The position numbers and the translations under genes were made by a program. Shown in pieces: positions 1,088-48,556 of a stretch of DNA of 64,000 nucleotides. This DNA comes from Thalia democratica (lineage: Eukaryota). The stretch covers positions 6,324,001-6,388,000 of the forward strand of contig OZ241830.1 in the NCBI GenBank assembly GCA_965202585.1, written 5' to 3'. The notes below the pieces were generated by a model. That model saw only the letters and a list, made by a program, of their open reading frames with translations, did not search any database and was not told where the DNA came from. Position 1 is the first letter of the stretch, and each line of letters starts with the position of its first letter.

Positions 1088-4000
1088 ATGTTAAAACCTA
1101 GCATTCTAATATTCCTAACAACGCTTCTCATCCTTGGTTGTCATGGAAAAACGGACAGATCCTACAAACTGCGAACCCTTTTGAGGGACATCCAAGGTGA
1201 CGACCCCACACTATACGCCAGGGGTGACAACGATGATGGTGACAACGAAGATGGTGATAACGACTTTGGGGAGTGTTTGGTGGAGGAGCAAGAGTGCAAC
1301 TGCACAGTGGAAACAACTACGGAGTGCGAGAAACGTGAGTTTGTGACGTCATATTGATATTTTTTTTATTGTGACGTCATAATGAATTTTTATTCATTGT
1401 GACGTTATATCAACTATTATTTATTTTAAGGTTTGTGGAGCATACTTTCGGCTGCAATTTTGTTTGTATTTATACTTAGTTAAAGTAAAATAGTTACGAT
1501 TTAAAATTAAACTAAGGAAATGGTATACTTAATTTGCCATTATTTTTTGTGTTTTCTTTCCGTTTGTACTTTTACATCATTACTACAATTAGTTTTGAAT
1601 CTTGACGGTAACTTGTTTTTTATATTATTTACAAACTATATATTTCTAAAAACTCTGCTATAGTTTTACTACTTGGAAACTGTTATTAACTTAATGTTAA
1701 AAGGATTTTGGTAATAAAAACTTTTGTTATTTGTTTGACTAGTAGGAGTAGTGGTTATAAACCCAGTTAACTTTTTTGACAAACTTCAAGAGTTTAGGTT
1801 AATTATTAACCTAAATAAGTAAACTGCTAAAGTTTGTAATTTATTTAGTTAAAACCTGTACTGAAATTTTATTAACAAAACCAAAAGTAATTTTCAAAGA
1901 TTGAAATTTATTTATATTACATTTTCATAGCAACTAAAATAATTGTAGTCAATACTGTGAAACAAATTTTGTAAAATAAGCAATGTACAATATGATATTT
2001 AAAAAATTAATCCAATTTTCAAAATTATCTCAAAAACGTGTTTATATCAATAAGCCTAATACCAACCCAAAGCTTGTTTTGTTTATACATTAACTTTTAT
2101 TTCAGTTTTAAATATGTTTATATCTATACATTAATCTATCTTTTGAAAACTTTACCTTTGAAAATATTAGCTTTAAAACTGTCAAAATAGTTTCAAAAAC
2201 TTCTAAATTTTGTTGATATATGATACAATAAAAACAACTCAAGAATTAAAAACTGATTTTAATTAAGTAAAAACAAATAATACAAAAACGCTTTTAAATT
2301 AGATCTAGAAACGATATATGCTGGGAATATTTTTATTGATATAATTACTGCCAAAATTTAGAAATTCGACTTTACTTGAAAACCTATTAAATTATGTTGA
2401 CATATGACATAAACACGTTTAGATAAAGATTTTTTTAAAGTTTGAGTGCTTAAGACAAAAAAGCTTTTAAGTTTATAGCATAATAAAAGTATACTTTGAT
2501 TATTTACTGTTCGTTTTTAAAGCTCTTTTGTAAAATACCTTAGATCGTTTACATTTTTCGCCAACTATAAAAAATAACTTGTTTTTATATTAACATTAAG
2601 TTAATATCTTTTCCTACATTTTTTTTACATATGACTATGTTTTCATATAAATCAAACTACAAATAAATTTCACAGCATTTTGTTAGCTCTGTCGACAGTT
2701 CTGTCGTTTACATTATCTGTTAGTTACTGAAAAAACTAATTGTTTGTGTACTAAAGTTAAGTTTATTTTTTTCTAAACAATTTTTACAAGTTAAGTTTGA
2801 TATTTTCCGAGAACTTTTTGTAATATTTTGTATTTTATAACACTTATACTTTTATTGTTTTTTTTTACTAAAGTCAAAAGTTAAACCCAAACTCTTACGA
2901 CTGTTCTTTCATTTAAATCAAACTACAAATAAATTTCACAGCATTTTGTTAGTTCTTTCGTTTACATTATCTGTCAGTTGAAAAAATATAAGTTGTTTGT
3001 GCAGTAGAGTTAAGTTTATTTCCATATAAGCATTTTTTTACAAGTTAATTTCTTCCGACAATTTTAAATAATAATTCGTAGTTTTTTAATACTTCTACTT
3101 TTATTGTAGTTATATTTTTTTATAAGTAAAAAGTTAAACCCAAACTCTTACTTTACAAAAACTTTACAAACTACATTTATAATAATCATAAGTTTTCTTT
3201 TACATCAAACTTCAACCTTAAAACTAAATTTAAATATTCATATTTTCCTCACAGCATCATGCGACCTGGTCATCCTGATAGACTCGAGCGAGTGTTTCCG
3301 GGACCAGTGGCAGGCCATCCTGTACTGGGTCAAATTTGTCGTGGTCAAGATCGGAAAACACTGTGACTCCGACACGTCCAGGGCTGCCGTTTGGCCGGTT
3401 TGTTATTTTTTTTAATTCAATAAAGTTTATTAATTTGATAATTGAATATCTCAAAACTAAGTATATAAGAAACTTTTCAATATAATGCATGTTTTAATTA
3501 ACTAAACAGTTTTTTTATAACTTTTTTTTGAAAAAAATTTCGAAAACACTTTTTGAAAACTTTTTGTTTTTCTTTTTGTTTGTATTACAAATTTTTGAAA
3601 AACTCAGTTTAAGTTAAAAATGTTTAAAAATGTTGCTTTACTTTTAACGAAGATATTTTATTTAAAGCTTTTATTAGTTTCTGGTTAAAATATATCATAT
3701 ATGTTTGCTTTCTTAAAACGGTCAATTTTAAAATAGTATTTCTTATCAACAAAAAACAAGTTTTTACATAAAAATGCGTACGAGAACTGAGCATTTAAGC
3801 AATTTTAACAAAAAGCTTGCGTTTACTACTTTAAAGGCACATTAACCTTAATTTGCGCAAAAAAAATCAAACATAAACAAAGCAAGTAAGTTCGAAGCAA
3901 TTTAGTAGTTGCTAATTGAGTTATTTTCGAAGTTTGGAAATGACGAATTCGAAGCCAAGTATCCGCCAAAAGAGTTCATGAAATTTAATAGCAGGGAGAT

Positions 4001-7000
4001 AAAATCTTACATCGACAAATATGTCAACTTTCTTGGGGGATCCGCTTTCCTGAACGCAAGTTTGTTTTCATTTTATTTATACTGTTTTTTACCAATACCA
4101 ACCGTATTAGTTATATCTGATATAGAATTCAAAATTACAAAACTTGTTTCTGTAACTTACCTAGTGTTTCACAACTTAAGTGAGTAAACTATTTTTATCC
4201 GTGTACTTGCTGCAGTAAATTCAAATTGGTTTAACTATTTTGTACTTTTACAGTTTGATTATTAGTAGAAAGATCTAGTTTTAAGCTGTAGTTTGTTTGT
4301 ATTTTCAGTTGTAAAAAAACTTGTTATTAATATTTAATAATTACATATATGCATTAAATATTGTATTTATAAGACTAGTCATTGTTTTCGTTACTTAAAT
4401 ATTAATTCGCAGTATATACATTAAAGATTAAAACATATAGAGATTTATTATTTTTTACTAAATAGAATTTTTCTAGCTTTTTTGCATAAAATCTAACCTA
4501 TTTTTGACTAGAATTAAGTTTAATCTATACGTCACAAAATCTATATAAACAAAGGTAAATTTTCTGCATAAAGTTTGTTGACAACAATTCTCATTGAAAT
4601 TTAAATTGTAGCTTAATTAATTTCTGTGTTTATAAATAATAATAATAGTGCAAAGTAAGTATTCTATTTTTTCCGACTTAAACCTGGTAATAAATAGGAT
4701 AGCTAATTCGCACTTGTATTTTTAATAAAATAACCAAGTAAGTTGAGCTATTTTTTAATAATCAATACAAATAATCATATTTCTGTTTATATAAAATAAA
4801 ATTTTTAATACCTAAGACAAAAATAAACCAGTTTTTTTGCGTTATAGGCACTGTAAACAAAGTTTTTAATCAATCAACTAAGAATAACATACAATTTTTA
4901 TTTGTTATAAAAACATTTAAGTTTCGATTTCAATTTAATCGATGTGTTTTGAATCTTTAGTATATTTGTTGAAACAATATGCTTGATGGATTAACAAATG
5001 TTTTAAGCTTCATTACTGCTCTTTATATCAAATTTACTACTCTCAGTAAGAGTTTGTTTTGGTATCATTTATTTTATTGAGTCTACAGCTTTCAACTGCC
5101 CTAGACTGATTGATAACTACAAGTTTATGCGAATTGAGCATATATACTTCGAACTATGAATCTAAAACTTTGCCGTTTTACCTTAGTTTGTTTAGAATGA
5201 TTTATGTTTTATGCACCTATTAAAGTTTAATTTTATAGGGTTTTAAATATAAGTTTTATTTGAGTCATACACATAGCTTTTCGTGTAGAATTTACAAGAT
5301 TCTTTTTATTGATTAACATTTGCTCTTTATATTTTATTTCGGTATAATTAATTATGTTAACCTTAAAACCTACAACTTTAACTGATTAATCTGATTAATA
5401 ACCAAAACTTTATCTAATGAGGAACACATTAACTTGTTTAATCGTTCAAAATAAAATTTTTTTTAGGACAATCTATCTTTAAAAGTTTTTTGGCGTTTAA
5501 ATTTTTATATGTTTGAAATTTTTTACAAGTTTAATCTACATTTCTGTGTTTGGTATAAAAAAGACTTTTTTTTCCAGTTTTTTAATATTTTATTTACTAA
5601 ACTAGTTTATCCTGTTTTTATTGTTTGTTTATTTATTGTTTCAAGTAAAAATGTTTTTAAAATTTTGTGCAATAGTTTCGATTGGCTAAACAATTTCAAA
5701 GGTAATATTTTACTTTCTTTCGGTGTATTTTTTCACTATTGTACTTTTAATTTCATATAAAACTTTGGGTAAAATGTATTAACTTAATAAGTAAAATATT
5801 TTGTATCAATCAGTATTAGCAAAATTAAGCTGATGTTAATAAACTATTTTATCTTAATTGAGTTCAAAACTTATCAACTTCATTTGCTGATCTATGGATT
5901 TTAAAACATTAGCTTGAATATTATTACTACAAATATGTTTATGTGTATACATTGATCAGCGTTAACTTAACAACATAAAAGCACATCAATAAAAATTAAA
6001 ACTTGTTTTTATTTCAACAACAATCAAGATATCAAGTTCAATTTGTTTTTATAAGCTTTTAATACTTTAATTATTTTTCTGATTTCAGGTCTTGCAGATG
6101 CAGCTAATACTTTTGAGAACCAGAATTCTGAAAATGATGTTCGTTTGTTTTATTTTGTTAAATTTTTAATAATAAAGTTTTATAAAATACCGTTTAACTT
6201 TCTGTAATAAAAGTAATAAAAAACTTTTTATATAGATACAACAACTTTGTATAACCATTATTTTTTTGAGTTTTACACGGGAAACTTGTATCATGACGGC
6301 AGTTATAATTTAAATTTTAAAAGTGTAATTGTTTATTTTTATTTTTTAAAGCTAGAAACTTAACTTATCTATTCAAAAAAAAATAAACAATGGAAAAAGT
6401 GTAACAAAGTTAACTAAATTACATTTATAACGAAAAATATCAAACCTATTTGAATAGTTTATAAAAAATTTAATATTTTTTTTATAGAAATTCGCGTTGG
6501 TGCTTACAAACGGTAAAAGTGACGAACACGTGACTTTGCAACAAATTGACAAACAATTAAAAAGATTCGAACGAATGGAGGTCACTACAATTCCGGTATC
6601 CGTATCTGAACCTTGCAGGTTTTAATATATATTGATACAAAATAACTGATAATGTTTTAAATAATTAAATGATTCTTTGTAATATTGCTATACTATTTAT
6701 TAATTTCGCGCTACTACATGTTTTGAACTTTAAAAGTATATTTATTTGTTTGTTTGTACTGTATTTAGTTAATATTTTTAATGTACTTATACTTTTGTGA
6801 TTTTAGTACATTAGTAAACTTCCTTATTTAAGGTTTAGACAAAATATTTTTAATATTATTTTAAGCAGGAATTTTTAGAAGTCTCGATTAAAAATTTTAA
6901 ACTTTTAACATTAAGGTATAATTTTTAATTTAGTCAGGTGAAATAAAGCTAAGTATAGAGTTTATTTAGATTATAAATTTATTACTATCATTTTTATAAA

Positions 7001-10000
7001 TATATATGTCTACAGTTTTTGAAGTTGATAGTTTATTTATAAATTAAATATCTACGTTTTAAGTAAAAATATTTAATAATAATAACAAATAATGATATAA
7101 CAACTTTATAAAAAGTTTTATTAAAGTGTTTAATTTAAACTAGAAATACGCTTCAAGCTCAATATATATATTTTTATACATCACAATAAAAGAATCCTTG
7201 ATATAAGCTTTTTATTAAAACTTTTGTACACAAAGTGTTAGTAAACCCTCAAAAAAAAATCGATTTAATACAGACTAGAAACAATTTATAATATTTTCAC
7301 AACCAATAGTGTTGCAATTGGTAAATATAATGATTTATATGTCTCGACGAGGTAGTAAAATGAATTTACTAAACAAGGGCTTTATGGTATGAGAAACAAT
7401 AAATCAAATTAGTAGTCGCAAAGTGTTCACAGCCAATACAGGTAAGAATTAAATTTGTCTGTCTCGCACATACAATTGTGCATTTATATTGCAATTCATT
7501 TGACGTGTATTTAACACGAATAAACATAAACGGTTTTTAATTTAAACTTTTATTAGCAATACACGAAAATTCGAAAAAATTTTTGCCTGTACAAGTCAAT
7601 TTAGCTTTAATGGTTGTTTATTACTTTCCTACAAAACTCAAAAGGTGTTTATTTAAAGATTACATTCCAATCCAAATTGACACAATTACTGATACAAAAC
7701 AATAAATAATTATCTGTCTCGGTGAGTAATTTGTACTGTCTTTTTTCTCAGTACAGTTATAAGACGGGAAACAATACAAAAATAACTTTATTCGTTTTAA
7801 CTTCCATTTAAAAAATTAACAATGAGTAAAAAAAATATTTTAAAACTACAACCTTTATTTTTAGTTTTAAACCTCCAATTAACCGAAATTATTTTTACAT
7901 TTATTAATCGTAAACAAGTTCGACTAAAAACCGATTAAATACATTTTGATGCTAATATAAAGTTCGTTTCTGTTGTACTAAAAACTCAAATCGAACTCAT
8001 TAACGATTCAGAATGACGGCACTTTACATTCTTTATGATTTAATCAAATAGTTGTAAAGTTCAATAAATTTTATTTCATTGAACTGATCAGACTTATTTA
8101 AGTGACAGAAAAAGAATTATACTTGGAATTGGAAGAAATAATACTTTCTTACTTGTGTAACTTTGCTCAGTTCTGCACTATAAAGTCAAGAAAGTTTTTC
8201 TTAAGCTGTATAGCGATAAAAAACAAAAGCATATTCACCTTTTTTTCCATTTAGTTAATTGAACTACTTTATAACAGCTCACCCCACTACGAAGATAACC
8301 TCAATTACAACTGTCCCAACAGAGAAGTCTTCAACCTCTTCTACAATAACTCAGGTAAATTGTTATGAGATATAAGACTATATAAGTTAATTAAACTTTC
8401 TATAACAACTCAGGTAAACTGTTTTATAATATATATATAGTATTAATTATACAATTTAATTCATTTTTCATTAAACACTCAGATAATTGGGATCCGATTG
8501 TTATGAGAAAATCATCCGTTTCAGACATCATGAAAGTTATAAGGACTGAGGTATGAACGTATTTTGAAAAAACTGTTGTTTTTATTTTGAAAATATAAAA
8601 GGTTGATAATATACGAATTGAGCTTTTTAATGTACAGATCTGTTTTTATTTTAAAGTAGGCTTAACATATAAAAAAGATGTTGTTCTTTCTTGATTTTCG
8701 TAGTTTTTATAAATTTCATTTTATACATACTGTTCACATTAAACAACGTTTATTTGCTTATAACGATAATTTAATGACATATATAATGACCTTTGTTGTA
8801 TTTAATTACATTTGTAAACTTGTGACTTAAGTTATTTGGTAAAGTACATTTCAAATTTGGTTTAACAACCTTTTAAGTAAGTATATTTTTTTACAGACAA
8901 ATGAATGTAAATCACAAGGAAAAGCGTCTTGCACATGTCCAGTTAGTTTTTGTAATTATATTAATTAAATGTACAAATTTATTGTTCTGTTAGTTATTAT
9001 AAAGATATTAATTAATTGCACAAGTTATAGTTGATACAAGTTACTAGGGTCAGCAGTCTTAATCAGGTGTTCATACGCTAAATAACTTTACACTATTTCA
9101 CTACTTTTTATAAGTAGTCTGAACTTTTAAGATTAGTAATAATAATAGACAGGTTTCTGTTTTAAACGACTTTCGAAGCTTTGTGCTGTCTTTTTTTCAT
9201 ATATATTTTTGACGTTTTTTAAATATTTTTTCGTTTAACGTTAATACTTTATCTATACTTTTCAGTACTCGAAGTGCAAAGCCAAAGGCATCCCAGTGAG
9301 TTTCATAATTTTAATTTACAAACATTTTATTTAATTTACTTAATTTAATTTTGTTTTAGGGACAAAAAGGAGAACCCGGTAGAGACGGTTTAGACGGTTT
9401 TGATGGATCTAAAGTTTGTTTAATAACAGTGTATTTAATAATTTACTAAATGTTTTCCTGTACCTAAAGTTCGTTTAACTTTTTATATAAACAACTAATT
9501 GAAAATTATATATAAAAGTTTATAGTAACACTTTTTTAGAAAAAAAGTTTTAACAACAGTGTTATTAAATAGTTTGATAAAAACTTTATAAAAGTTTCTT
9601 TTAATAATTTTTAACAGACTTGAATTTTGTTAGATTAATATATAAGTTTCATAAAAAAGTTATACACAAATTTATTCTAATAATTTTCACAGGGAGAAAA
9701 AGGAAAGAGGGGACAAAAAGTAATTTTGATTTTTATTTAAATAACATTTTCATACTTTGCACAACTGTTTTATATACACGTTTACAATTATAATAGAAAA
9801 AAAGTTTGTTATTAGCCATTTTTATGCAAATAAAGTTGTATAATATATAGCATTTTTAATTATTTTAGGGAGAACCAAGCGAGGGTCGTGACGGAATAAA
9901 GGTAACGAGTTTTTAATTTATAAATTTAATTTTTATTTAGTTTATATGTTTAATTGTTTTATTTGTAATAAAATATTGATTTATATACTTAAGTATGTTT

Positions 10001-13000
10001 ATTTCTAAAAATTATTGAAGTTTACTGTTAACATTGAATAATGTTTTTTTTAACTTTGGTTAGAATCAAAAAGTTTTGATGTCAGTAATTAATCATGTGT
10101 CGTAAAATGACATTCTGAAAACAATTTATATTCATACCAATTGAATTCATAACAACATGCAAATTATTTTGTTTAAATTTTAAAGGGAAACAAAGGAGAG
10201 CCAGGACCAATCGGACCTGTTGGACCAAAAGGTGACACCGGTGACAAAGGCAAAAAGGTTAGAATTTATTTTTTTAACAAGTATATAGTTAAAAAATTGA
10301 TTACTCATGAACTTTAAAGTTTTTCTTCCATTTTTTATTAGCTTTAACTAAAGGTTCTATACAGATTTTTGATTATTTAAAGTTTTTACATGAATTTTAA
10401 AGAACTCTACACAGGGTAACGTTTTTTACGTTCATTTTATACAACATGTTCAAGTAAATTGAATCTAGTTAATTAAAGTAAAAATGCATAAAATAATAAA
10501 CTAGTCGTTTTATTAAATTTTTATTTATTGTATTTGTATAACAAAAATTACACTTAATCTTGATACTTTTTTAGTTAATAAAACAATTTAAGCTTTTTGT
10601 TATGACGTTTAGGGAGATAAAGGTGATGACGGTTTAACTGGTCCAAAAGGCGATCAAGGAAAAAAGGTTTGTTTTGAAATAATGATACAAAACTAATAAA
10701 AAAATCTTTTTAATTTACATTAACAATTACAGTTATAAAGGAATAGAGGTTTTTAAAAAGTAATACTAACAAACCAAAAAAACTATTAATGTTTACACAA
10801 ACAACTATATTTATAAAGGGAAAAAAGTTTGTTTTAAAATAATAGTACAGTTTAAAGAAATATTAAAGTGTTCATAAACAAATATAATATTAAAGAAAAA
10901 GGTTTGTTAAAAATAGTAATGCAGCAAAATGACAAAACAAAAATGTTTTTCTAGAGAAATTGTGACTATAACTTTTCAGGGACAAAAAGGTGAATTTGGA
11001 TTACCAGGACTAACAGTTAGTTAAATTTATATGATAAATTATTTCTGTTACTACACTGTATGAAACATTTAAGTATTTGCAAGCATTTACAACGATTTTA
11101 TGTTAGTTTTATTACGTTTACTAGGCTTCTGGCCGAAAAATGGTTTCGATTTAAAAACTTATTTAAAGTGGCAAACGCAACAAGTATTTTTATAGTTTTT
11201 AAAACAACACAATTTTCTGAAAATTTTAAATACCATCATTAGTCTAACTAAAGTTAGTTATTTTTGCCTATAAACTTAAATCAAAATGTTTTTTAAGCTT
11301 TTTAACTTATACTTCTTATCGTTTATGATTGTCATTTATTCTGTTTGTAAAACAAAGAAGTTTCAAAACAAAATTTTCAACACACTTAATTTTAAAAATG
11401 AAATATTTCAGGGTATCAAAGGTAATAAAGGCGAAAAAGGAGACAAATCTGACATAGTAAGTTATTCAAAATAAACAAAAGAAAATAATAAAAAATTATA
11501 AATAAATACTTACAGCCTGGTCCAAAAGGAGAAATGGGTGCAAAGGGACGACCCGGTCCCGATGGTAACCCAGGAAACCCGGGATCGAAGGTTAGTTGTC
11601 ATGACAACGTATCAACTTTTAATAAAAGTTATAAAACCACTCATTAAGTGACACAAAATAAATTCCAGACTAATAATGACAACGTCTGAAAAGTTTAACT
11701 TGTAATTTGTGACTTATGTGAAAAGCTTACTAAACTTACCGATTTACTGAAGTAGCAGTTAACATTTTTCGTTTTAATTTAAAATTTTATTCGAACTTGA
11801 AGCGAGTGATTACGGGTTTAGCACTTCCGAATTTTATTGTTGTGCTGTTAAATTTGTTGTAATTTCCACAAAAACAGTTTAAAATGACCTAAAAATCGAA
11901 GAATGACATTTGGAATTTTGTTATAACCTCAATTATTGAACATATTTATGCTATAAGTTTTGCATGTTTAATACTACAATGTTGCGATTTTAAACACATT
12001 GTAATTTTAAAACATACAATTTAAAATGATCTAAAACAAAGAAGAAAAAAACGTTGGAATTTTACAGTAACTTTGTTTTTAGAACACTATTATGCTTGTA
12101 AAACAAACAAATTATTTATTTTTATTTTAGGGTCCGAAAGGATGCTGTGGACCCCCTGGCATTCCCGGTAAAAGTGGAACTAAAGTTTGTTTATTTTTAT
12201 TATTTTATGCATGATAAAGCATTAACAAAGTTTCGATTACTTGTTGTACAATAAATGCAAATACTGAGAAACGTAACTTTCAAACTACTACTATATGAAA
12301 ACTAGCTTCAGTTACGTAATAAGTTTTTAAAAAGAAAACAAATAAAGTTACTCTACTATTTTTTGATTAAAATAAGTGTTATTTGATTTTATACTTAAAG
12401 CTACCAACAAAAATTAGTTCTAAAAGAAACTTTTTAATTGAACTTTAAATAATAATAATAATTTTGCTTTAAGCCAAAACGGTATTTTTATTTTGAAACG
12501 ATTAGCTTTAAAAGTTTGAATTACATTTTGTAACAATAAATTCACAACAGTTGAAGTGTTTTTAAAATAGATACGTTTCTAATCTTTTTTGCTTAATTTT
12601 ATTAATTTCATAAAGGGTGAAAGTGGTAAAGATGGAATACCCGGAATAAACGGACTTGATGTAAGTAAAAATATAAAACAATTAAAATTTATTAATTATA
12701 TTTGTAAACTTAATAAACTTATTAAACTTAAATGTTGCAAGTAAATAGTACAACAGAATGATTTGCGAGTTTTTAATAGCTTTTTAATTATCTTTTGTTA
12801 AAGATAACGTAATTAAAAACATATAAAGTTTTTTAAAATATCACGTTTAAAAGATAGTCTAAAATAAATAAACTAGGCTTAATAAAAAATACAAGATTAA
12901 AATTAACATGCTATTCAAACAAGTTACTATTTCGCTTATAATCTTATCTCTTCGTTTTATATTTGTTTTTTAAGTATTAATTAATTATTTTTTAGGGTTT

Positions 13001-26800: not shown

Positions 26801-26879
26801 TATCTCCATTACTACAAACAGTAAACCAAGTGTTAAAATTTAGCATAAAGACACGAATATAACTTTAACAAAACTCAAA

Positions 26880-28900: not shown

Positions 28901-29031
28901 TAGACAAAGCGAGTAATCTCTTAATCAGGTTTCGAGACAACCGATCTGAAAGTTAAAAGTTAAAATACATACCTTTGTATGTTTTTTTTTTAATTTAAGT
29001 TTAAATTCAAAAAAAAGTATATAAGTTTATG

Positions 29032-29035
<4 letters not shown>

Positions 29036-29062
<27 letters not shown>
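29036..29062. repeat. (TA)n microsatellite, ~13 units
   Basis: Uninterrupted TA run. Confidence 0.95.
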
Positions 29063-29066
<4 letters not shown>

Positions 29067-29199
29067 TTAGAAACAACTTAAAAAATGCAGTACATTTTCA
29101 AACTTTTTTATTATTTTTTGATTAACTCAACAATAGACTGCAGCCACACAAATATTTTTAAAGTTAAACTTCCATAAAATAGTATTTCAACAAAAATTA

Positions 29200-29378
29200 T
29201 ATATTTACAGCTTCTAGATAATACATATTAGACTTGAAATAGAAAATATTTAAACAAACTATTAATTTTCACAGCTTCTAGATATTACATATTAGACTTG
29301 AAATAGAAAATATATAAACAAAATAATTTATATATCCACAGCTTCTAGATATTACATATTAGACTTGAAATAGAAAAT
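29200..29378 (+). repeat. Triplicated splice acceptor plus 5' UTR leader of gene B (64/67-bp units)
   Basis: acag-cttctagat(a/t)(a/t)acatattagacttgaaatagaaaat three times; acceptors end at 29210, 29274, 29341; only the third copy continues into ATG. Confidence 0.92.
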
Positions 29379-38300: not shown

Positions 38301-41300
38301 TTTTCAGGCGGTGAGTTTGAAGTTCTTACTTGATATGGCACCAAGAATAATCAACAAAGAATCAAAATTCCATACTTTTATTTTTATTCATCTCTTTTTA
38401 AACTTTCGTTTTATTTGTTTTCAAAACAAAAGCATAAAACCATAGAAAATTATATAAATGAAAGTGTTTCAAACCAATGATTGAGCATAAAATCTTTATT
38501 TTTAAATGATTACTTTTACCATAGAATATTAAAACTTTTAAACTTTAAAACAAATGTACTTAAAAAAACTTGTTAAAACTCAAACAGTTATTTTTTATGC
38601 TTTAATGAACATTTAAAAAAATTTTCCCTTTACACAAAAGATGATCAAAGGAAATGCCCCAGAGCAACTTGTGGACCAGTGCAGACAGTGCAACTGCACC
38701 TGCGACCTTCCGGTTGGACCCAAGGGAGATAAGGGTGACAAGGGAGACTCCGTAAAGGTTCATAATAAATAGTTGAATATATAATGAAAAAATGTTAAAT
38801 AATTAATTAAGTATTATAAACTAATTGAATTAAAAAAAAAGAAATTGATGTCTTTTTAGTTTCTTCAAATTCTAAACCATATGAAAACTAAATATATAAA
38901 ACTTTTGTTGTACGTTGCTATGCACTTCTAATCACGTGTTTTTTGTTGCCAGGGAGAAAAAGGAGAACCAGGTAACGATGGTGTTGACGGTATTGACGGT
39001 TTGGCCGGACCCAAGGTAAATTTTTTATTTATACATAAAATACATGTACACTGTTTTGTTTGAATTGAAATAATACTTATTTATTATAAAGCTCTTTAAA
39101 AGAAGTTAAAATATTAAAAGATTTTATTTTTAAAACATATTATTTAAACTTACAAAATATTTTCTTCTTGATTTAAATTAAGATACTTCATTACTGTTTG
39201 TTATAATTATCAAACTAATAAAGTAATAAAATTTTACAGGGAGAAACTGGAGAGCCAGTAAGTTTTAAATTTTTATTGTTTATAAACAATCTCAATATAA
39301 AAAACAAATACAATATTGCAGTATTAGTTGTTTTTTTGTTTTTTATTCAATCTATCATTAATCTTATTTTATAACACTCAACACAATAATAAATCTTAAA
39401 CTTGTCCACAATAGTTGTCTAAAGTTTTCAAAATTTATCATTCAGCAGAAACAACTATTAAAAAAATAATAAATCTATCAAAACAGTTTAACAGCTGCAC
39501 AAAAGATGCCATTTACATTTGTCATTGCAGCAATACATCATTATGTAAAAAAAAATAATAAATCTTTTAAATGTTGCAACATCCAAAACAATACACAAAC
39601 AAACGAATTTTCTTACAAAAACACGTTTTCAAGTTCAGACGTTTTTGTGAGCGCCACATCGGGTGCTTTAACATTTGAAAAAAAACACAAAAGACTTGGT
39701 TCCATTGTTGTGCTTGATTGATGTGCTTTTCTGCTAAATCGGGGCGACTTTTGCCTAATCCATCATTATTTCATAGTAATTTTCATTTTATTTTATTTTA
39801 TTTTTTCTACAGGGTGTGCAAGGCGAAAAAGGAGACGAAGGCGAACAGGTAAGAATATTTAATAAACGGTTATTATTATTTGTTGTTTGTTCATTTTAAT
39901 AATATTTTTATTTTTTCTTCACAGGGTGTACCTGGCAAACAAGGAGAACCAGGCGAGAGAGTGAGTTGTTGTTATATAAAAAATATAATTTATTAATGTA
40001 TTAATGAATATATTTTTACCCTAAAAATATAACTTATATGCATTTATTCTATTAAAGTTTATTAAAAAATACTTATAAGGCAACTTTTAATGCAAACAAA
40101 CACTTATTTCAAATTCAATGAGCTAAAAAAACAAAATTGTATATTCTAAATTTTAGAACTTATTCTTTACATTTAAAATTTTATTAAATGATAAAAGCAG
40201 ACTTATTTTTCTATTATTATTAAACGCTTTAAAGTCTATCACTTCATAAACTGACGCACGACAATGATTAATTATTTAATAATAAATCCGACAATTTATG
40301 CCCTTTCAGTTCCTTTGATCTTTTATTCGAAGCTCTAATTGAATAAGTATGTAAGCAAGATTAAAAATAGATTTTTGTGCAACAAAAGTCGTGACGGACA
40401 CGAGTTTTGTCTGGACTTTTTGTTTGTGACGTCACAACTTAAACATGTTTCGAACATCAAAGAGCGAATTGCAACAGAACAATAATTTAAAACCCCCGAT
40501 TAACCATTTATTGTTAACATTTGCGCAATAATTGAGCTTTCAACATCAATTGCAACGTTTTTAAAAGTTAATATCTTGCATTATTCTTGTATTATGACGT
40601 CACAAAAAAAAAACATATTAACTCTTCGTTATGACTAACTGATTTGCTTCTTTGAAGGGCAAAACCGGAAAGACCGGACCCGAGGGACCGCAGGGCGAAA
40701 AGGGCGAGCAAGGCGATCAGGGCGAGGTCGGACCGGAGGGACCCGAGGGCAAGAAGGGAGACCAAGGAGACGAAGGCGAGAGGGGCGCGCCAGGAAAAGA
40801 CGGTTTGGACGGTATCGATGGACAGAAGGGTGCACAGGGCGAGGAAGGACCACAAGGTGAACCCGGTATCGGTATCAAGGTAAGTTAAACAAATGTTAAG
40901 TTAAGTCCAGGAAGTTTATAACTAATTGGTGGTTTTAAGTTATATAAATGCTGAATAATTTGCACAGCGTTAATAACTTTTTAAAGTTTTAAAATTTATG
41001 AAAAAAAGACTAAAGTGAATAATAATAAGCTGCCTTCAAAATTTTTTACAAACTAAAATGTAATTTTTAAAAGAAGAAAACTATTTTGTTATTACTTACA
41101 GGGAGACCAAGGAGAAAAGGGAGACCAAGGTCCCCAGGGACCCGAAGGAGAAATGGGTCCCGACGGAAACGACGGTCCCAGAGGTAAGCAGGGTCTGTGC
41201 GGCGCCCCCGGCCCTGCAGGCATGAAGGGAGAAAGAGGTGCGACGGGAGAAGACGGCAGCAACGGAGTGGCCGGTCCCGAGGGACAGCAGGGTCCAAGGG

Positions 41301-44300
41301 GATTCCCGGGCGTCCAGGGCATGGAAGGAAAGAGAGGCGAGCCCGGCAGGGACGGAGCGCAGGGCGAGCAGGGTCTGACCGGAGAGAGGGGACCCCGCGG
41401 TCGCGAGGGAGTCGCCGGCATGAAGGGAGAAAAGGGAGAGCCTTCTAACGTTGCAGGACCTCAAGGACCCGAGGGGGTGTCAGGCGCGAGGGGACCCAGA
41501 GGAGTGTCAGGTAACGACGGTTTGGACGGAGCACAGGGCGCACCTGGTGTGCAAGGACCAAGAGTGAGTTGGAATTAAATTGATATTTTTTATATATATT
41601 TTACTTTGTATTATTTGTAGGGACCAAGAGGAGAAAAGGGTGAATGCACCGGAATCGACTTTGAGGAGTTCAGAGCGAAGATCGTCGAAATCATCAGAGA
41701 CCTGATGCCTTCTGGTTAGCATGAGTATTAGAAAAAAATTATAATTAAGAAAAGTAAATGTCTTTGAACTATAACTAAAATTTGTTATTTTTTACAGAAT
41801 GCGGTAAGTGAATTGTGCATAGAAGTTTTGGAATACAGTAAGATCAAGCATGCTTTTTTACTTTGCTTTTTGTAGTTTTAAAATGTTAAACTTGAGACTT
41901 CACTCAAAAACATTTTGAAACGGTTTATTCAAAGTAAATTTTTTAATATAAAATTTATCCAATTTAAATTTTTTAAAGTCTCAACGGCTTAATGCTTAAT
42001 TTCGCTACGAGTAGTTAAAACATTTTGTAATTTAAAAAACAAATTGCTTAGCAAAAAAATTCCAAAAAAAAAAATTGGTGAACAAACATTCGATTTGGGG
42101 ACTTATATTTTTCAATATGTAAACAATTTGGTGCTTTGATTTATCGAAATTGTCATGACAACAGCCAACAGCAACCAGGAGCCGACTCCCCCGCCAAAAT
42201 GCAGCATCCGTTACCCCATCGACCTGGTCTTCCTCGTGGACGGCTCCCACTCGATCCCCGCCGGAGACTTCATCACCCTGAAGAAGTGGATCATAGACGT
42301 GGTCGAGACCTTCAAGCCTTCCCAGATCGAGATCCCGTTGTACCTGAACATCGTGCAGTTCTTCGGCGACATCAGGCAGGAGGTCAGGGACACCATCTGC
42401 ACCGATGACGTCAAAGACAACTGTCAGGAGCTCGATGACGTCAGGAGGCAGATCGCCGCCATCAGGAAGGGCGGCAGGGGAACCTCGACCTGGTCGGGGC
42501 TGGCTTACGTGGTTGACAACGTGGGCGCCACCTTGAGGCGTGACTCCCAGAAGGTCCTCATCACCATCACGGACGGGTCCCCGTCGGACGACGAGAACCT
42601 CGAAGCGCTGGACAGCGCCAAGGAGATCTTCGACCAGATGTTTGCCGTCGGCGTGGGCGAGGACCTGAACAAGAACATCCTGTCCATGCTGTCCAAGGAC
42701 GAGCCCATCCACGTGTCGGACTTCAGCGCTCTTGACGCCGTCATCGAGAGGATGACCAGCAAGATCTGCAACGAGATCGAGTCCCACATCTTAGGTAACT
42801 AGATCCAAGTAGCAATCAGAAATGTTTTGAGGGCTTTGATAATTGAGGCTGTGAAAAGAAAAAAAGTTTGAACAAAACTGCTGTGCTCCTTTTGAATGAC
42901 GTAGAAATAAAATGCAATCAAAAATGTTTTAGAGGCTGAGTATAGATGCTTTTAATTTAGGCTGGTATGAATCGTTGAATGACTTTAAGTATGCAATCAA
43001 AAGTAATGCAAAATGGTTTAATTTGCCAACTTTAGGCTGCCAGAATTAGTTGGTGAGCTTTTACGAAAGCATGATAAAATATTCTACTCAGAACAAAGAG
43101 AAATTAAGCAACCATAAATAAGTCTTTTAATTTGCATCATATTGGCTGACTCTGCTTTTGAAATCTTCTTTTTCTTGCCCTAAATTGGAATGAACCTTTA
43201 GTTTATCAGTTTTAAGATATAGTGTGTATACCCTGGCTGAAAGCTAAGTCCATTGAAAAATTATGGCACAAAATGGTGTGTCGTTCAGCTTAAATAAAAC
43301 TAGTGGCTGTTTTCCTTTTAAATAAACGTTAAAATCAGTTTTACAAGTAATGCTTTTTCGTTGGAATTTGATTTCTGATATTCATAAACCAAGTGTTTTT
43401 AATAAATACTTGATTTCATAAAATTATTGTTAATTAGGCAAATTTTAGATGTAAAGATTTGAATTTGATTTGTACAAAACGTAGTTTACAGTTAAATGAA
43501 AAATCTTTGAGTTTCAACATGACGCCTTAGTGAATAAGAAAAAACCTAATTTTCATTTTAAAATTTAACTTTTTACTTTGACAAATTTTGAACAAAGCAA
43601 ACTTCTATGAATATGTTTAATTTAATGAAGTTATGTTGTGTAATTACAACAAAACTTATCTGTTTTCTCAACCAAGCTGCGAATTTTTAAAAGAGAAATC
43701 TCGTTAAGCAAATGAGCATGAAAAACTAAGCAATCAAAATACAATTACATTTGCTGAACAAATCCTAATTGACATGAGAAATCATTGCAACTTTGTGCAA
43801 AAGGCTTTGCAACTTAATAAACAAAGCTTCCAACAGTGCTTACTTTTTTTTTGTAGATCAGGCTTTTTACTTAATTTCTTAAACAAATATCTTTGCTTTG
43901 CAGTTTATAGAAAATTTCTGAGCTTTTATTATTTTGCTTTTTTCGATGCTTACTTATTTATTTTAGCTGTTTTTCTTTGTGTTAATTTTTTTATCTAATC
44001 AATTTTTATTTTAACAGCTAACGAAGAACACGCTGATGAAATAGGTGAGTAAAATTTTTTTATTATTTTGAATGCATTTTATTTTCATTAAAATTTTATT
44101 TTAAATATTATTTTAAAATCACCACTTAACATGTGTGCCGTTTTTTTTTTTTTGTTTTTTTTCAACTAACAAACAAACTAACACTGCAAACTGTTTTTTC
44201 GAGTCACAACGCAGCGCATGTTAATCGTGACGTCATAATACTTTCGTGTGATATTTAATTATTACGTCACAATGAGTGCTCTTTCGACGTGGTGACGTCA

Positions 44301-47300
44301 TATACGAGCAACTTAATGGAGAAACTTGCAATTGTTTAATTTAATTTAATTTGTTTAATTTGTGTGATGTCACCACCGAAAAAGGAGCCCTTTTTTAAGT
44401 TTCAACGGTGACTCAACTTTCACAGTTTTGCAAAAAAAAATTAAAAGTTTAAAATATTTTTTGAAAATTTATTGAAAATTTTATTAGTTGCTCGTTTCCG
44501 CCGTCACCACGGAAAAAAGGGAAATCACCATGACGACGAGCACGACGAGGAAAATTAAGGGAAATCCCCGCGAATCACGTCATACGATGCATGACGTCAC
44601 AATTTTTTTGGATTGCTTTTATTTTGCATAAATTTTTAGTTTTTTTAATTTCTTCATTTCTTGTCACTTCGACTTCTTTTAATTTCTCGATATTTTTTTA
44701 ATCATCGCTCGGGTTTCGCTCGTTTTTTCTATTCAGGGGACTATTATTTTTACGATGCACATTTTTCCGATAAAATATTCAGCAAGAAGAACCGATCTAA
44801 CTCAATTTTCAAACTAAAAATTCAGCATAGAAAACCAGCGCCTTACGTTGCTCAACAGCAAAGTTTAAAAACGCTCTTATAATCTACCTTAAACAAATAA
44901 ATACCTTTTATTGTAAACAAAAGGTCGCTTTCGAGGCAAGTGGTCCGTTAAAATAGACCACAGGGGAGTTTAAAACTTGTAAACAAACTTTGAAGCGATG
45001 AAGGGAGGCCTTTTAAATTGTCGTTTTAACTTTTACGTAGTCGACAGAGCGTTTAAAATCTTGTTATTTTTGCTGAATCTTTTCAATGCGGGACGCTTGT
45101 AAAACGTGATCTCTTAATTTTTTCGAACTATGCATCAGAGTGCCGATTTGTTAGAAAATCACAAAAAATACTCCAACGTGTTTTTTGTAGGATTTTTGCT
45201 TTATATATATAGATAGACGATAATTTTACTATTATAAGTCAGAAGCCAATTTTGCAGTAGATATTTTCGTCGATAATTAACAGTCGTCGATTGCATTAGA
45301 ACGTTTAATTTTTTTAGCAATTTTTTAAAAGTTGTAATTGCGGGTCCTACTCTTTCAAGTGCTTTTCTTTTATATTCTTTTTCATTTCTTTCTAGTCGTC
45401 TCAGTGCTGATATATAAAACTTTGTAAATACTTTATTACTGAACTTTTACGTTTGTATTTCGCAAATTATTATGCAAATAAACGAGCTACACGATAAAAT
45501 AAACAAAAAGCGTTGTGATTTGAAATAATATTTAAAATAAACAGAGAAATTAACTCCGAGACCCCCTAGTAGAGGCGACACAGTTTAATGAAGTTTTAAT
45601 GGAGATCAGGACATTAAAAGGCCAGATAAATTAGAGTAGAGACTTAATTTTGTATTAATTTGATTCCATTATCATCATCAAATCCGCTTTTTTAGATCTG
45701 CTTTTTTATAGTTTTTTTCACAATAAAACATTGGAAAGATACATGTTTTTTTTTTGTCACGGTTTAAACGGCTTTTAGGTTTGTGTATAAGGAAAAAAGT
45801 ATAAATTAATATACCAAAGTAAAGCCATTACTTTGGAGTATGTGGTTTGTTTAATAAGTATTAAATATGGTGTATAACTGCATTTGATGCAACCTAACCT
45901 TTTCTTGTATTTTAACTTTTTTCTCTTCTAAAATAAATGTCAAATATCAAAAGTTTAAAACTGCTACACTAAAAAAAATGATTGTATAAAAAAGTTAACC
46001 TTTTATTTTCTTGTTTCTTCTTTTTGAAAAAAAACTTTAAAACTACAAGAAAATACTAACTAATAAGGTTTTACAGTCACACATTTATATATATTTTTTG
46101 TGACATTTTTACACCTTTAAGCTGAAACTTTCTGTTTAAAACTTTGCTAACATTGCGGTGTAAAACTGTTAAGCAAATCAATTCAAAACATGTTTTGACA
46201 TGCTTTAAAAGTTTCTTAACAAACTACCTTTAACCCATTTGGTGATTGCTGCGAATTTCGATGACGTCATAAATGCTGCGACATCATTTTGCCGTGACGT
46301 CATTTGTTGCATCTTTGATCTGAAAACTTGGCTGACTGCATTCATCTTTGCGAAAACATTCGAAATTAAACACTCAAATCTTTCAATTTTCAAAGAACAA
46401 GTCACCGAGAACCCGATGATGGACAAGTACAAGGGACGGACGGAGGTCTGCTCCTCCCCGCCACCCACCGGCAACTGTCTCCATGGCAACCAGATGCCGG
46501 TGGGCAAGTGGTACTGGTCCTCGCAGGAGGGGATCTGCATTTACTACAACTACAGGAACTGCCCCGGCTCGAACATATTCGACTCGATGCGGGAGTGCGA
46601 GAACACGTGCAAGAAGATACCCAATAGATACAGTTAGTGTGTGACGTCATAATTGATTAAAGTGTGACGTCATGATACTCAAAGTGTGATGTCGTATTAA
46701 AAGTTAAAATCATCTTATCATCTTTGTTGAGTTTATAAAAACCTTAATTTGCTTAATCATTTTTCAACGTTAGGGCTTAACTAAGTAATTTTAGTTTTTT
46801 TTAACTTAAAAACGTATATTCAAGTTGTACTTTGTATAACGTTTTATAAACGCCTCCTTAAACTCTTTAAACGTGTCCTTAGCCTTGTTAAATGTGAACA
46901 AAACATTGCAGAACTTTTAGCTGCAGATCAGTACACTGTTAAACTTGAGGCAAATTATAAAGTTATCTTAGCTTATGACAACAAAATAAGGTTTAAGTTC
47001 CGCCCAGGAAGAAGCTTGTTTTTCCTAGGTTGATTTACAGCTTGTTTAGATTTAAACCTGTCAGCTTTCATGCATCGCTATTAGGTATTATTACAACTAT
47101 TTTCAAGCTAATTTTGATAAAAATTCTTAAACACATTTTTAACGTTAAAACTTACTACAAGGTTATTGTTACGACGTAGTTTTTAAAGAAAAGTATAAAA
47201 TAGTTTAATACCTGGTCTGAACATTTATGCTATTAAAGTTTTTTACAATTGCGATTTAAGCTAGTCGAAGGGGCAATAAAAAATATTTTTTTTTTATCTA

Positions 47301-48556
47301 ATCTCGAAAACAAATAAAAAGTACAGCCGTAAAAAAACTTTATAAAAACATTTTGTTTTTATTCGGGCGCATTCGAGTTTAAATTCGTAAAACAAACAAG
47401 AGTTTTAAATCTTAAAGCCGTGATCTTTTTAAGCTGAGACACACAGGAAGTGATGGTTACGTCACAAAGGTAAAAAAAAAGCTCGAAATTTAAACTTGAA
47501 AATTTAAATCCCGTTTCAGGCTCAGACAGGGGTCACAGATTAAATTTGCGAGATGCAAACAAGATTATCTACCGTCGATGCGATTGGCCGGTTTCGTTGC
47601 CACGGTAACGTTTTCGTTGCCACGGTAACTTTTTCGTTGCCACGGCGAAATCGTGCCGTTGCTAATCATCTTGTTGCTACGGGCGGCGGATTAGCGTCGC
47701 CCTGAAATCAAAAACGTTTTAATGAAATTTCAAATTTTGCGCGCAACACTCAGATATTATTAAATATTTCTGATAGTTCTGTTTTATGTTTGGTTTTTGC
47801 TTACAAAGTAGTTTGCAGTGTGTTTGCGTTTTAGTTTATTAAAAAAACTTTAAACTTTTTTTTTGGAAAAAATTCAAGACTTTAAAACAAAAACTGCGCG
47901 CGCTTATTATTTTTACTTGCTTCTCATTGGTTTAAAACACGTCACGCTTGACTGCAGTTCCGCTTCCCGCCACCACCACCACGCCCCAACCCACTCCGGA
48001 GATGACGGAGGCCCCGGTGGACGAAGAGGAAGAAATAGGGTTTTTCCCCAATGAGTCTTCAGGGGAATCCCCGGAAGGTTTGTGACGTCACATTTCGCTT
48101 TTGCGGATTAATTTTGCGTAAAAAAAATTTCTAAAGACATTATAGTAAAACAAAAATTTGTAATATTTTAGTGTTTTAAAGTTTTTAAACAAACAAGATT
48201 TTAAAACTTACCAAAAGCTCTTTATAATAGTTAAATTTTTACATTTTTACTTTAAATAGTAAAAATTTTATAACTTCGTCATAGATTCTTTTGTAGACTC
48301 TATGAATTAAAAAAAAATTTGTCGAAAATAGTTTATGTTTAAAGAGTTTTGATCACCAAAAGCTTGCTTGCCACTGTGAAACGGCTTCACTACATATTTA
48401 TTAAAAATAAAATAAACGTTTTTGATAAATTATTCAAACAATGCAGATGAAGAGGAAGTGATTCCCCCCACGGACGACGATGACGTTGACGAGTCCTCGG
48501 GAATTTACTACGCCAGCAACTACTACGACGAGCTCGGAGGAGAAAGAGACTTCTAA
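29377..48556 (+). CDS. Gene B (long isoform): secreted vWA-collagen-vWA-Kunitz protein with acidic tail (collagen XXVIII-like architecture), ~1006 aa, 21 coding exons
   Basis: Hand-spliced exons in one frame (sum 3021 nt): 29377-29584, 32975-33144, 34919-35060, 35868-35914, 36348-36481, 37247-37391, 38308-38310 (candidate microexon), 38641-38751, 38953-39015, 39240-39257, 39813-39848, 39925-39960, 40658-40879, 41102-41563, 41621-41714, 41798-41803 (microexon), 42165-42794, 44018-44044, 46396-46632, 47958-48077, 48447-48556. Signal peptide [22 protein letters not shown]; v[23 protein letters not shown]; six-Cys Kunitz. Confidence 0.85.
34333..34625. repeat. ~85-bp direct repeat ~205 nt apart in gene B intron 2
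   Basis: ccattcaac(a/t)gtgtatttgtat...tattaagccactaggatatctga(t/c)ctatcagt occurs twice. Confidence 0.85.
36155..36370 (+). repeat. Near-perfect 90-bp tandem triplication of the acceptor and first 8 codons of a gene B vWA exon
   Basis: ttttttaaccag-aaaaaagt(a/c)at(c/a)atcacccttac with AG ending at 36167, 36257, 36347; unit exactly 90 nt and stop-free (ORF track 36072-36503). Confidence 0.95.
38716..41647 (+). other. Gene B collagen triple-helical region (~300 aa, two interruptions)
   Basis: Gly-X-Y from GPKGDK to GEKGEC; interruptions GIG and GEPSNVAG; single internal Cys (GLC, 41198-41200). Confidence 0.9.
42165..42794 (+). CDS. Gene B single-exon C-terminal vWA domain with intact MIDAS
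   Basis: [12 protein letters not shown]...GTSTW...ITITDGSP...FAVGVGE; acceptor CAG 42162-42164, donor GTAACT 42795; very high GC3. Confidence 0.9.
44488..44558 (+). CDS. Gene B candidate alternative terminal exon ([23 protein letters not shown]), short isoform ~874 aa
   Basis: Phase-1 acceptor ttttattag at 44487 matches the phase-1 donor at 44045; GC-rich coding-like island in AT-rich intron; resembles the gene A terminus (RRRRHGK); stop followed by TGACGTCA like the other stops. Confidence 0.65.
46396..46632 (+). CDS. Gene B Kunitz/BPTI-domain exon (phase 1-1)
   Basis: C-x8-C-x19-C-x7-C-x11-C-x3-C ([11 protein letters not shown]...[10 protein letters not shown]...NC...[11 protein letters not shown]); acceptor caaag 46395, donor GTTAGT 46633. 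Confidence 0.88.
47444..47700. promoter_or_regulatory. Intronic cluster: ETS site, CRE half-site, inverted CCAAT, tandem RFX X-boxes, GC box
   Basis: CAGGAAGTG 47444-47452; TTACGTCA 47457-47464; ATTGG 47583-47587; GTTGCCACGGTAAC 47596-47609 and 47616-47629, partial 47636-47646; GGGCGG 47681. Confidence 0.55.
47958..48556 (+). CDS. Gene B last two exons: Thr/Pro-rich and highly acidic tail with Ser-Gly and Tyr-Tyr motifs
   Basis: Exon 47958-48077 ([39 protein letters not shown]) and 48447-48556 ([36 protein letters not shown]); phases 1-1 and 1-stop are compatible with the Kunitz donor; not reported by the ORF track. Confidence 0.75.

Follow-up and report, generated by a model that had tools for sequence, protein, structure and literature searches.

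A head-to-tail pair of vWA collagen genes in a pelagic tunicate that probably belongs to a tunicate-specific family with collagen VI- and collagen XXVIII-like layouts

Introduction

Collagens VI and XXVIII are generally regarded as matrix proteins of vertebrates, and their origin is unclear. In the α1 and α2 chains of collagen VI (COL6A1/2) an N-terminal vWA domain (N1) is followed by a Cys junction, a short triple helix of 335-336 residues with Cys and few interruptions, an amphipathic segment with Cys, and two C-terminal vWA domains (C1 and C2). Collagen XXVIII (COL28) consists of a vWA domain, a helix of ~530 residues (528-531), a second vWA domain and a C-terminal Kunitz domain. Literature searches for collagen VI or XXVIII genes of tunicates returned no paper.

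Here we analyze a stretch of 64,000 nucleotides from Thalia democratica (contig C6:6324001-6388000 of an 802-Mb assembly), referred to as the window. It consists of AT-rich animal DNA (~25% G+C) and carries two collagen genes, A and B, head-to-tail on the + strand; the pelagic-tunicate origin agrees with the protein relatives found for both genes. Gene A has the layout vWA-helix-vWA-vWA. Gene B has the layout vWA-helix-vWA with alternative 3' ends, one of which is a Kunitz exon. We consider it probable that the window contains an old pair of paralogous, secreted short-helix vWA collagens of a tunicate-specific family, and that the COL6 layout of gene A arose inside this family. The nearest invertebrate chordates would then possess a two-gene family of their own made from collagen VI/XXVIII parts, and the locus would offer a concrete, testable route for the assembly or pruning of the vertebrate architectures.

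Genes A and B are paralogues of one family

The exons of gene B were set by spliced alignment of the metatranscriptome protein P0155 (929 residues, 3 mismatches) and are also supported by the cDNA-like JGI contig L001 (~95% nucleotide identity). The gene spans 29377 to 48556, and its start is at 29377, not near 33000. For gene A no homologous protein could guide the modelling, and its exons were placed manually, using open frames and splice sites and comparing the region with gene B. Ab initio exon chaining trained on gene B recovered all exons of gene B but missed the AT-rich exons of the N-terminal vWA domain of gene A, which is why gene A was curated manually. The resulting model (1088-20505) comprises 32 exons, has GT-AG borders throughout and an open frame of 1050 residues.

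In a global alignment the two proteins are 38.7% identical across 773 columns. By blastp, the N-terminal vWA domains (A_N and B_N) are 32% identical over 203 residues (E 8e-28). The C-terminal vWA domain of gene B (B_C) matches the last vWA domain of gene A (A_C2; 33.5% over 227 residues, 102 bits) better than the first C-terminal one (A_C1; 26% over 195 residues, 57 bits), and A_C1 and A_C2 are 22% identical. Introns of phases 0, 1, 0 and 2 interrupt both N-terminal vWA domains at positions that are identical or differ by one alignment column. Both genes also have a phase-1 intron just upstream of this domain, agree in the border of their last helix exon, and carry a small post-helix Cys exon between two phase-1 introns.

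Much of this had been anticipated in a preliminary description of the locus, which proposed tandem paralogy from shared motifs, four identical intron positions and phases in the N-terminal vWA domain, helices of similar length with a post-helix amphipathic segment and Cys linker, and the resemblance of B_C to the last rather than the first C-terminal vWA domain of gene A. The quoted motifs are present on the + strand (DSSECFRDQ at 3281 and DSSACFRDQ at 33016; LTNGKS at 6503 and 36366; IPVSV at 6590 and 36453; LQIVQF at 19122 and LNIVQF at 42344; VRTEVNTYIC at 19490; KVMITITDG at 19927 and KVLITITDG at 42551; FDHMLAVGVGE at 20011 with an 11-residue counterpart at 42629), with the correction that the actual letters of one 10-residue motif differ from those quoted. 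At least four introns correspond as described. The helices comprise 271 residues in gene A and 302 in gene B, and each is followed by an amphipathic stretch and then by the Cys exon.

Further similarities concern the details of the helix and its flanks. A common fingerprint, which differs from that of COL6A1/2 and COL28, is found in the helices of A, B, Styela, Clavelina and one more pelagic species: counted from the C-terminal end, there is a Cys at 131-135, and breaks lie at 49-52 (four residues, Sxxx) and at 165-168 (short). In gene A this Cys is a CC pair 134-135 residues from the C-end (136-137 from the N-end), and the breaks read SE, SDIP and STAP; in gene B it lies 131 residues from the C-end, and there are 3 breaks. 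The junction between the N-terminal vWA domain and the helix of gene A reads ECKSQGKASCTCP, and the amphipathic stretch after the helix is NEVYLKTLIRNMIIEYNEET. An N-terminal motif similar to the one in exon 1 of gene A is found in gene B and upstream of the called start of P0075, a transcript contig discussed below.

Phylogenetic analysis was based on a maximum-likelihood (ML) tree of 74 domains (first tree) and on a second tree, which comprised 52 rows and included additional COL6α1/α2 references. The tunicate N-terminal vWA domains form one clade in both (99/100 and 100/100), in agreement with the proposed paralogy. Within it, a B-type clade including Styela and Clavelina leaves out gene A (89/86 in the first tree, 95/95 in the second). 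Since these ascidian genes group with B and exclude A, the duplication is old; it predates the split of ascidian and pelagic B-type genes. The C-terminal domains behave similarly in the first tree, where all first C-terminal vWA domains of tunicates form a clade with A_C1, A_C2 and B_C (100/99). The last vWA domain of gene A is the domain of this family that we term Ca. Beyond A and B, no further close member of the family was found in the 802-Mb genome.

Relatives in other tunicates

The best named match of gene B is a Styela clava protein annotated as 'collagen alpha-1(XXVIII) chain-like' (40% identity, 96% coverage), followed by a Clavelina protein and Ciona F6QQE0, and then by vertebrate COL28 at ~30%. 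The ascidian B-type genes (Styela clava P0176/P0179, Ciona intestinalis F6QQE0 / XP_078481143 'matrilin-1-like', Clavelina lepadiformis P0183) resemble gene B in the clades of their N- and C-terminal vWA domains and in the helix fingerprint, and their C-terminal modules likewise vary between isoforms. They differ in that Styela and Ciona carry a second C-terminal vWA domain (Cb), which groups with COL21-type vWA domains. The type occurs across tunicates, and gene B is its representative in this genome. Ciona XP_078481143 has the layout collagen-vWA-Kunitz-vWA. Outside pelagic tunicates, no Kunitz domain matches that of gene B better than its homologue in this protein (38% identity, E 8e-16), and the tunicate B-type gene had the module ancestrally. 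A search for a Cb-type vWA domain or a Kunitz relic near gene A or 3' of gene B found none, and the window contains no Cb exon for gene B.

None of the ascidian genes is of the A type. The nearest relative of A_N in the first tree (98/89) is P0075, a transcript contig from SRA run SRR27980871, although the second tree did not resolve this pairing. Like gene A, P0075 has a CC pair 133-134 residues from the C-end of the helix. Unlike gene A, it has a single C-terminal vWA domain followed by a Cys-rich acidic tail, and its identity to A is ~30%. Three other proteins of promising length were considered as A-type orthologues and rejected: P0412 turned out to be B-type, and P0423 and P0485 are vertebrate-type COL6α1/α2-like by helix length and tree position. 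P0412, a Logan transcript of another organism, has ~150 residues of Cys-rich repeats, EGF-like by eye, between the post-helix segment and the vWA domain, and an RFRR tail that resembles the alternative end of gene B.

Comparison with collagens VI and XXVIII

Gene A matches the layout of COL6A1/2 element by element, from the N1 domain and Cys junction through the short helix with Cys and few interruptions and the amphipathic-Cys segment to C1 and C2. The helix, however, is shorter than that of COL6A1/2, which has a single Cys 88 (about 88-89) residues from the N-end and a break at 74, in contrast to the CC pair and the differently placed breaks of gene A. Nor do the COL6A1/2 domains group with the N-terminal or the last vWA domain of gene A. 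Both arrangements were rejected by the approximately unbiased (AU) test (A-type N with COL6A1/2 N, p=1e-4; A_C2 with COL6 C2, p=0.006).

Gene B encodes all modules of COL28, i.e. vWA, helix, vWA and C-terminal Kunitz, in frame. Among the transcripts, L001 contains the Kunitz module without the second vWA domain, and the combination of vWA and Kunitz was seen only in a more distant species (P0161). COL28 proteins are the best named full-length matches of gene B outside tunicates, and the pre-helix TCxCEK of COL28 is closest to the tunicate CxCxC junction; the post-helix amphipathic-Cys segment is also similar. The COL28 helix, on the other hand, has 15-16 breaks, one every 23 residues, and a Cys 55 residues from the N-end, and it is far longer than that of gene B. 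The COL28 C-terminal vWA domain does not join the tunicate C-terminal clade in the first tree. COL28 Kunitz domains are 31-39% identical to that of gene B, no better than the Kunitz domains of the long (α6-like) collagen VI chains; no Kunitz domain of vertebrate COL28 or COL6 scores better than E ~1e-6 against it, and ~55 residues are too few to settle homology with the COL28 domain. Unlike in COL28, the Kunitz domain of gene B is encoded by an alternative exon.

If gene A were the tunicate orthologue of COL6A1/A2 and gene B that of COL28A1, the pair would be a relic of the duplication behind both, and the sisterhood of A and B an artefact of fast evolution. The mimicry of both layouts, the COL28 matches of gene B and the resemblance of the pre-helix junctions would be explained in this way, and COL6A1/2 N1 and COL28 N1 are indeed mutual closest relatives (95/84 in the first tree, 98/95 in the second). 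However, the AU test rejects not only the grouping of A with COL6A1/2 given above but also that of B-type N with COL28 N to the exclusion of A (p=0.005). Moreover, A and B have derived motifs, intron positions and a helix fingerprint in common that are absent from COL6 and COL28, and their helices of 271 and 302 residues contrast with 335 and 530. We regard separate orthology as highly improbable. The preliminary description had named beforehand, as evidence against sister genes, a position of A and B inside separate vertebrate COL6 and COL28 orthogroups; by these tests they lie outside them.

A relationship at the level of the whole family is a different matter. On visual inspection, A, B, Styela, COL6A1/2 and COL28, but not COL21, have an amphipathic segment followed by a Cys cluster directly before the C-terminal vWA domain, and a Cys junction before the helix. 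The tunicate N-terminal clade joins COL6A1/2 plus COL28 weakly in the first tree (80/81), and the second tree did not resolve this link. Both the junction motifs and this one tree would fit a single modular ancestor of COL6α1/α2 and COL28. It is therefore conceivable, albeit doubtful, that the tunicate family is the single pro-orthologue of COL6α1/α2 and COL28, and that their ancestor consisted of vWA-helix-vWA-Kunitz-vWA phase 1-1 cassettes, as still found in Ciona. If so, COL6α1/α2 and COL28 would be two prunings of one modular gene, and a locus with live exon skipping would illustrate the mechanism.

The preliminary description had gone further and suggested that one simple local duplication, with gain or loss of the middle vWA domain and of a Kunitz exon, interconverts the two layouts. 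This scheme is not supported: the duplication is old, with ascidian genes in a B-type clade that excludes A; the last vWA domain of gene A is of the tunicate Ca type and not COL6 C2; in the helix fingerprint A and B resemble each other but not COL6 or COL28; and a single gene with vWA, Kunitz and a second vWA domain is already present in the ascidian B type. Of the two outcomes it had left open, a model for the origin of the collagen VI/XXVIII clade and a lineage-specific convergence, the latter fits better, and the locus bears on the former only at the family level just described. We caution against naming tunicate genes 'XXVIII-like' or 'VI-like' by domain order alone.

The C-terminus of gene B is a string of alternatively spliced cassettes

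All C-terminal modules of gene B are phase 1-1 units: the vWA exon of 630 nucleotides (nt), a 27-nt linker, the Kunitz exon of 237 nt and a 120-nt tail exon. Their in-frame gain or loss is thus possible, as the preliminary description had supposed, and transcripts do skip or add them. Among the members of the 90% cluster of P0155 and its neighbours we counted at least five kinds of C-terminus. The vWA domain is followed either by the acidic tail (P0155) or by an alternative end of 12 residues, RFRR-His (P0003, P0152); with the vWA exon skipped, the C-terminus is the acidic tail (P0151), another short end (P0154) or the Kunitz domain (P0173, L001). Of the gathering cut-offs of the Pfam models used (VWA PF00092, Collagen PF01391, Kunitz_BPTI PF00014), those for vWA and Kunitz are exceeded by the respective exons of gene B (74.9 and 31.3 bits); P0155 and P0173 also score above cut-off. 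The C-terminus of gene B is accordingly a string of alternatively spliced phase 1-1 cassettes, so that vWA and Kunitz modules are exchanged by splicing in living animals.

The Kunitz exon has two uses, as a cassette that keeps the frame and as an alternative last exon. A donor (GTTAGT) follows position 46632; splicing there keeps the frame with the acidic tail according to a frame check, and without splicing a stop codon at 46635-46637 makes the exon terminal. The near-identical transcript L001 joins 44044 to 46396, which demonstrates use of the Kunitz acceptor, and then continues unspliced to ~46830. Here the Kunitz exon is terminal and the vWA exon is skipped. In P0161/L015, from a more distant pelagic species, the vWA exon is joined to the Kunitz exon and the downstream intron is retained up to the last tail exon. 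The symmetric Kunitz exon postulated in the preliminary description is therefore real with respect to its phases, but it is alternative rather than constitutive.

Origin of the additional vWA domain in gene A

Gene A has three vWA envelopes around one helix and no Kunitz domain; compared with the family layout it has one extra, very divergent vWA domain before its Ca-type domain. Only the first exon of A_C2 is recognized by the Pfam vWA model (PF00092, 28.1 bits, above the gathering cut-off), whereas A_N and A_C1 were identified as vWA domains by blastp and a home-made hidden Markov model. A_C1 is a block of four exons (648 nt) that forms a phase 1-1 module.

One explanation for this domain is that both C-terminal vWA domains of gene A are ancestral and homologous to C1+C2 of COL6α1/α2, or at least that A_C1 is an ancient C1 domain, which gene B lost; the layout would then be ancestral. 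The AU test does not reject A_C1 with COL6A1/2 C1 (p=0.10), the loss of a phase 1-1 unit preserves the frame, two C-terminal vWA domains occur in ascidian B-type genes too, and A_C1 and A_C2 have no intron positions in common. Against this, the ML tree places A_C1 within the tunicate Ca clade, and its best blastp matches in the family are the C-terminal vWA domains of B-type genes, with two short unnamed single-vWA proteins scoring slightly higher. In addition, A_C2 is rejected as a COL6 C2 domain, and the second vWA domain of Styela and Ciona groups with COL21, so that theirs is not the arrangement of gene A. An ancestral layout therefore appears unlikely to us.

The ML tree favours the extra domain being a strongly diverged internal duplicate, with an older module as the alternative. 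Because the branch of A_C1 is very long (2.45 substitutions per site in the first tree) and the AU test rejects neither placement, we infer an origin by internal duplication. Gene A would accordingly be a divergent paralogue that kept the N-terminal vWA domain, the C-terminal 170 helix residues with Cys and interruptions, the putative amphipathic-Cys trimerization region and the Ca-type vWA domain. The simplest account of its COL6-like layout would be that a phase 1-1 vWA module was duplicated, rather than that the layout was inherited from a COL6 ancestor. The collagen VI look of gene A is most likely convergent, and a collagen-VI-like layout could thus arise independently through one added in-frame vWA cassette.

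Several points weigh against a tunicate-specific origin of both layouts as favoured here. The AU test rejects neither the placement of A_C1 with COL6A1/2 C1 nor its position as sister of A_C2 (p=0.07). The first tree contained one COL6A1-labelled reference, to which the second tree added a Logan row that groups with it and more α2-like rows. Tunicate proteins evolve fast and their branches are long, and the A+B clade could be inflated as a result of long-branch attraction. In gene B, the vWA exon is not joined to the Kunitz exon in any transcript of this species. No A-type protein appeared in three protein searches, and the model of gene A was derived from the sequence alone. A scan of metagenome contigs, among which near-identical genomes may be missing, with exon 30 of gene A, which is unique in the genome, gave no match, and a search of sequencing runs gave two runs only that contain the stretch, both DNA-like. 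Finally, what is said below on the assembly and function of the chains relies on analogy.

The lack of A-like proteins in the searches, whereas B transcripts are common in marine metatranscriptomes, could indicate that gene A is a silent or dying duplicate whose architecture has no functional meaning. The lower G+C content of its exons and their poor scores in a codon model trained on gene B point in the same direction. Yet none of the 32 exons is interrupted, the 62 splice dinucleotides are canonical without exception, the Gly-X-Y continuity is intact and the pattern of Cys and interruptions is conserved; at ~32% identity to gene B an unconstrained copy would have decayed long ago. It is thus very unlikely that gene A is decaying.

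Presumed assembly of the chains

By analogy with collagens VI and XXVIII, both chains may trimerize from the C-terminal end, and the conserved helix Cys could provide disulphide-linked higher-order assembly into beaded filaments. The vWA and Kunitz modules would then serve as interaction surfaces. Co-assembly of A and B would be allowed by the colinear C-terminal 170 helix residues, yet the helix lengths differ by 31 residues.

Coordinates and further observations

Table 1. Features of genes A and B. Positions refer to the window.
Feature	Position	Strand	Evidence
Gene A exon 1: signal peptide, basic KTDRSYKLRTLL motif, acidic Cys-containing N-terminus, phase-1 end	1088..1334	+	open reading frame, GT donor
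Gene A N-terminal vWA, exons 2-7: 3255-3397, 3933-4059, 6089-6138, 6488-6618, 8278-8354, 8483-8550	3255..8550	+	manual model, GT-AG; 32% identity and phases 0/1/0/2 with B
Gene A pre-helix Cys junction exon (TNECKSQGKASCTCP)	8897..8941	+	manual model
Gene A triple helix: 271 residues, 15 phase-0 exons	9360..14412	+	manual model
Gene A post-helix amphipathic segment (end of exon 14386-14473) and 42-nt Cys mini-exon 14768-14809, phase 1-1	14413..14809	+	manual model
Gene A first C-terminal vWA (A_C1), exons 16014-16178, 16580-16784, 17905-18045, 18495-18631	16014..18631	+	manual model; 26% identity to B_C
Gene A last vWA (A_C2), exons 18973-19148, 19490-19759, 19930-20094, 20416-20505 (stop TAG)	18973..20505	+	manual model; 33.5% identity to B_C; Pfam VWA on first exon
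Gene B exon 1: signal peptide, 11-residue motif, Cys cluster	29377..29584	+	P0155 spliced alignment; L001 cDNA
Gene B N-terminal vWA, exons 32975-33144, 34919-35060, 35868-35914, 36348-36481, 37247-37391	32975..37391	+	P0155, L001
Gene B CxCxC junction and 302-residue helix, exons 38641-38757, 38953-39015, 39240-39257, 39813-39848, 39925-39960, 40658-40879, 41102-41563, 41621-	38641..41647	+	P0155, L001
Gene B post-helix amphipathic segment and 6-nt Cys microexon 41798-41803 (phase 1-1)	41648..41803	+	P0155, L001
Gene B C-terminal vWA, single 630-nt phase 1-1 exon	42165..42794	+	Pfam PF00092, E 1.2e-20, 74.9 bits; P0155
Gene B 27-nt linker exon (ANEEHADEI), phase 1-1	44018..44044	+	P0155, L001
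Gene B alternative terminal coding segment, 12-residue end and stop (acceptor position approximate)	44484..44558	+	tblastn of P0003; isoforms P0003/P0152
Gene B Kunitz exon, 237 nt to 46632, phase 1-1 if spliced	46396..46637	+	Pfam PF00014, E 2.4e-7, 31.3 bits; L001
Gene B acidic tail exons 47958-48077 (120 nt), 48447-48556 (stop)	47958..48556	+	P0155 alignment; P0102

The N-terminal vWA domain of gene A contains an extra phase-1 intron (8355-8482) that is not present in gene B. The motif AACTCAGGTAAA(T/C)TG occurs twice in the region 8330-8490, and the related ACACTCAG forms the acceptor of this intron; its two ends therefore look like copies of each other. In the intron following exon 26 of gene A, a short second copy of the 3' end of that exon is located at 16916-16975. 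The residues ..NYHACVEVN are encoded in its frame and also in an alternative frame of 16644-16790, which looks like a small local duplication.

In gene B, the first 39 nt of L001 match three places ~64 nt apart (29209-29247, 29273-29311 and from 29340), so that a tandem repeat is present at the 5' untranslated region or promoter (29209-29380). A second repeat at 36069-36500 contains a 30-residue unit three times in an open frame, upstream of and overlapping the acceptor of exon 5 (36348). It is a recent 90-bp tandem triplication that copied the acceptor and the first codons, and the transcripts use the last copy. Between the exons ending at 37391 and starting at 38641, one Ala of the B transcripts, between ELK and MIK, requires a 3-nt microexon or unusual splice sites (37392-38640). 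Placements at 37667-37669 and 38308-38310 fit equally well, and this residue was left unplaced.

Two other collagen genes of the same genome (G000:C9:1826156-1833508 and G000:C6:61298735-61305435) have uninterrupted helix frames of >1000 residues, followed by a single-exon vWA domain that is 26-29% identical to that of gene B. Between genes A and B, the region 26990-28250 is richer in G+C and contains overlapping open frames of 90-140 residues on both strands; it may be a transposon remnant. Far 3' of gene B, at 60800-61100, open frames on both strands contain repeated RATKFSFAGRI / RAADLSFAGRIWPAGRSL units, which constitute a short, internally repeated element.

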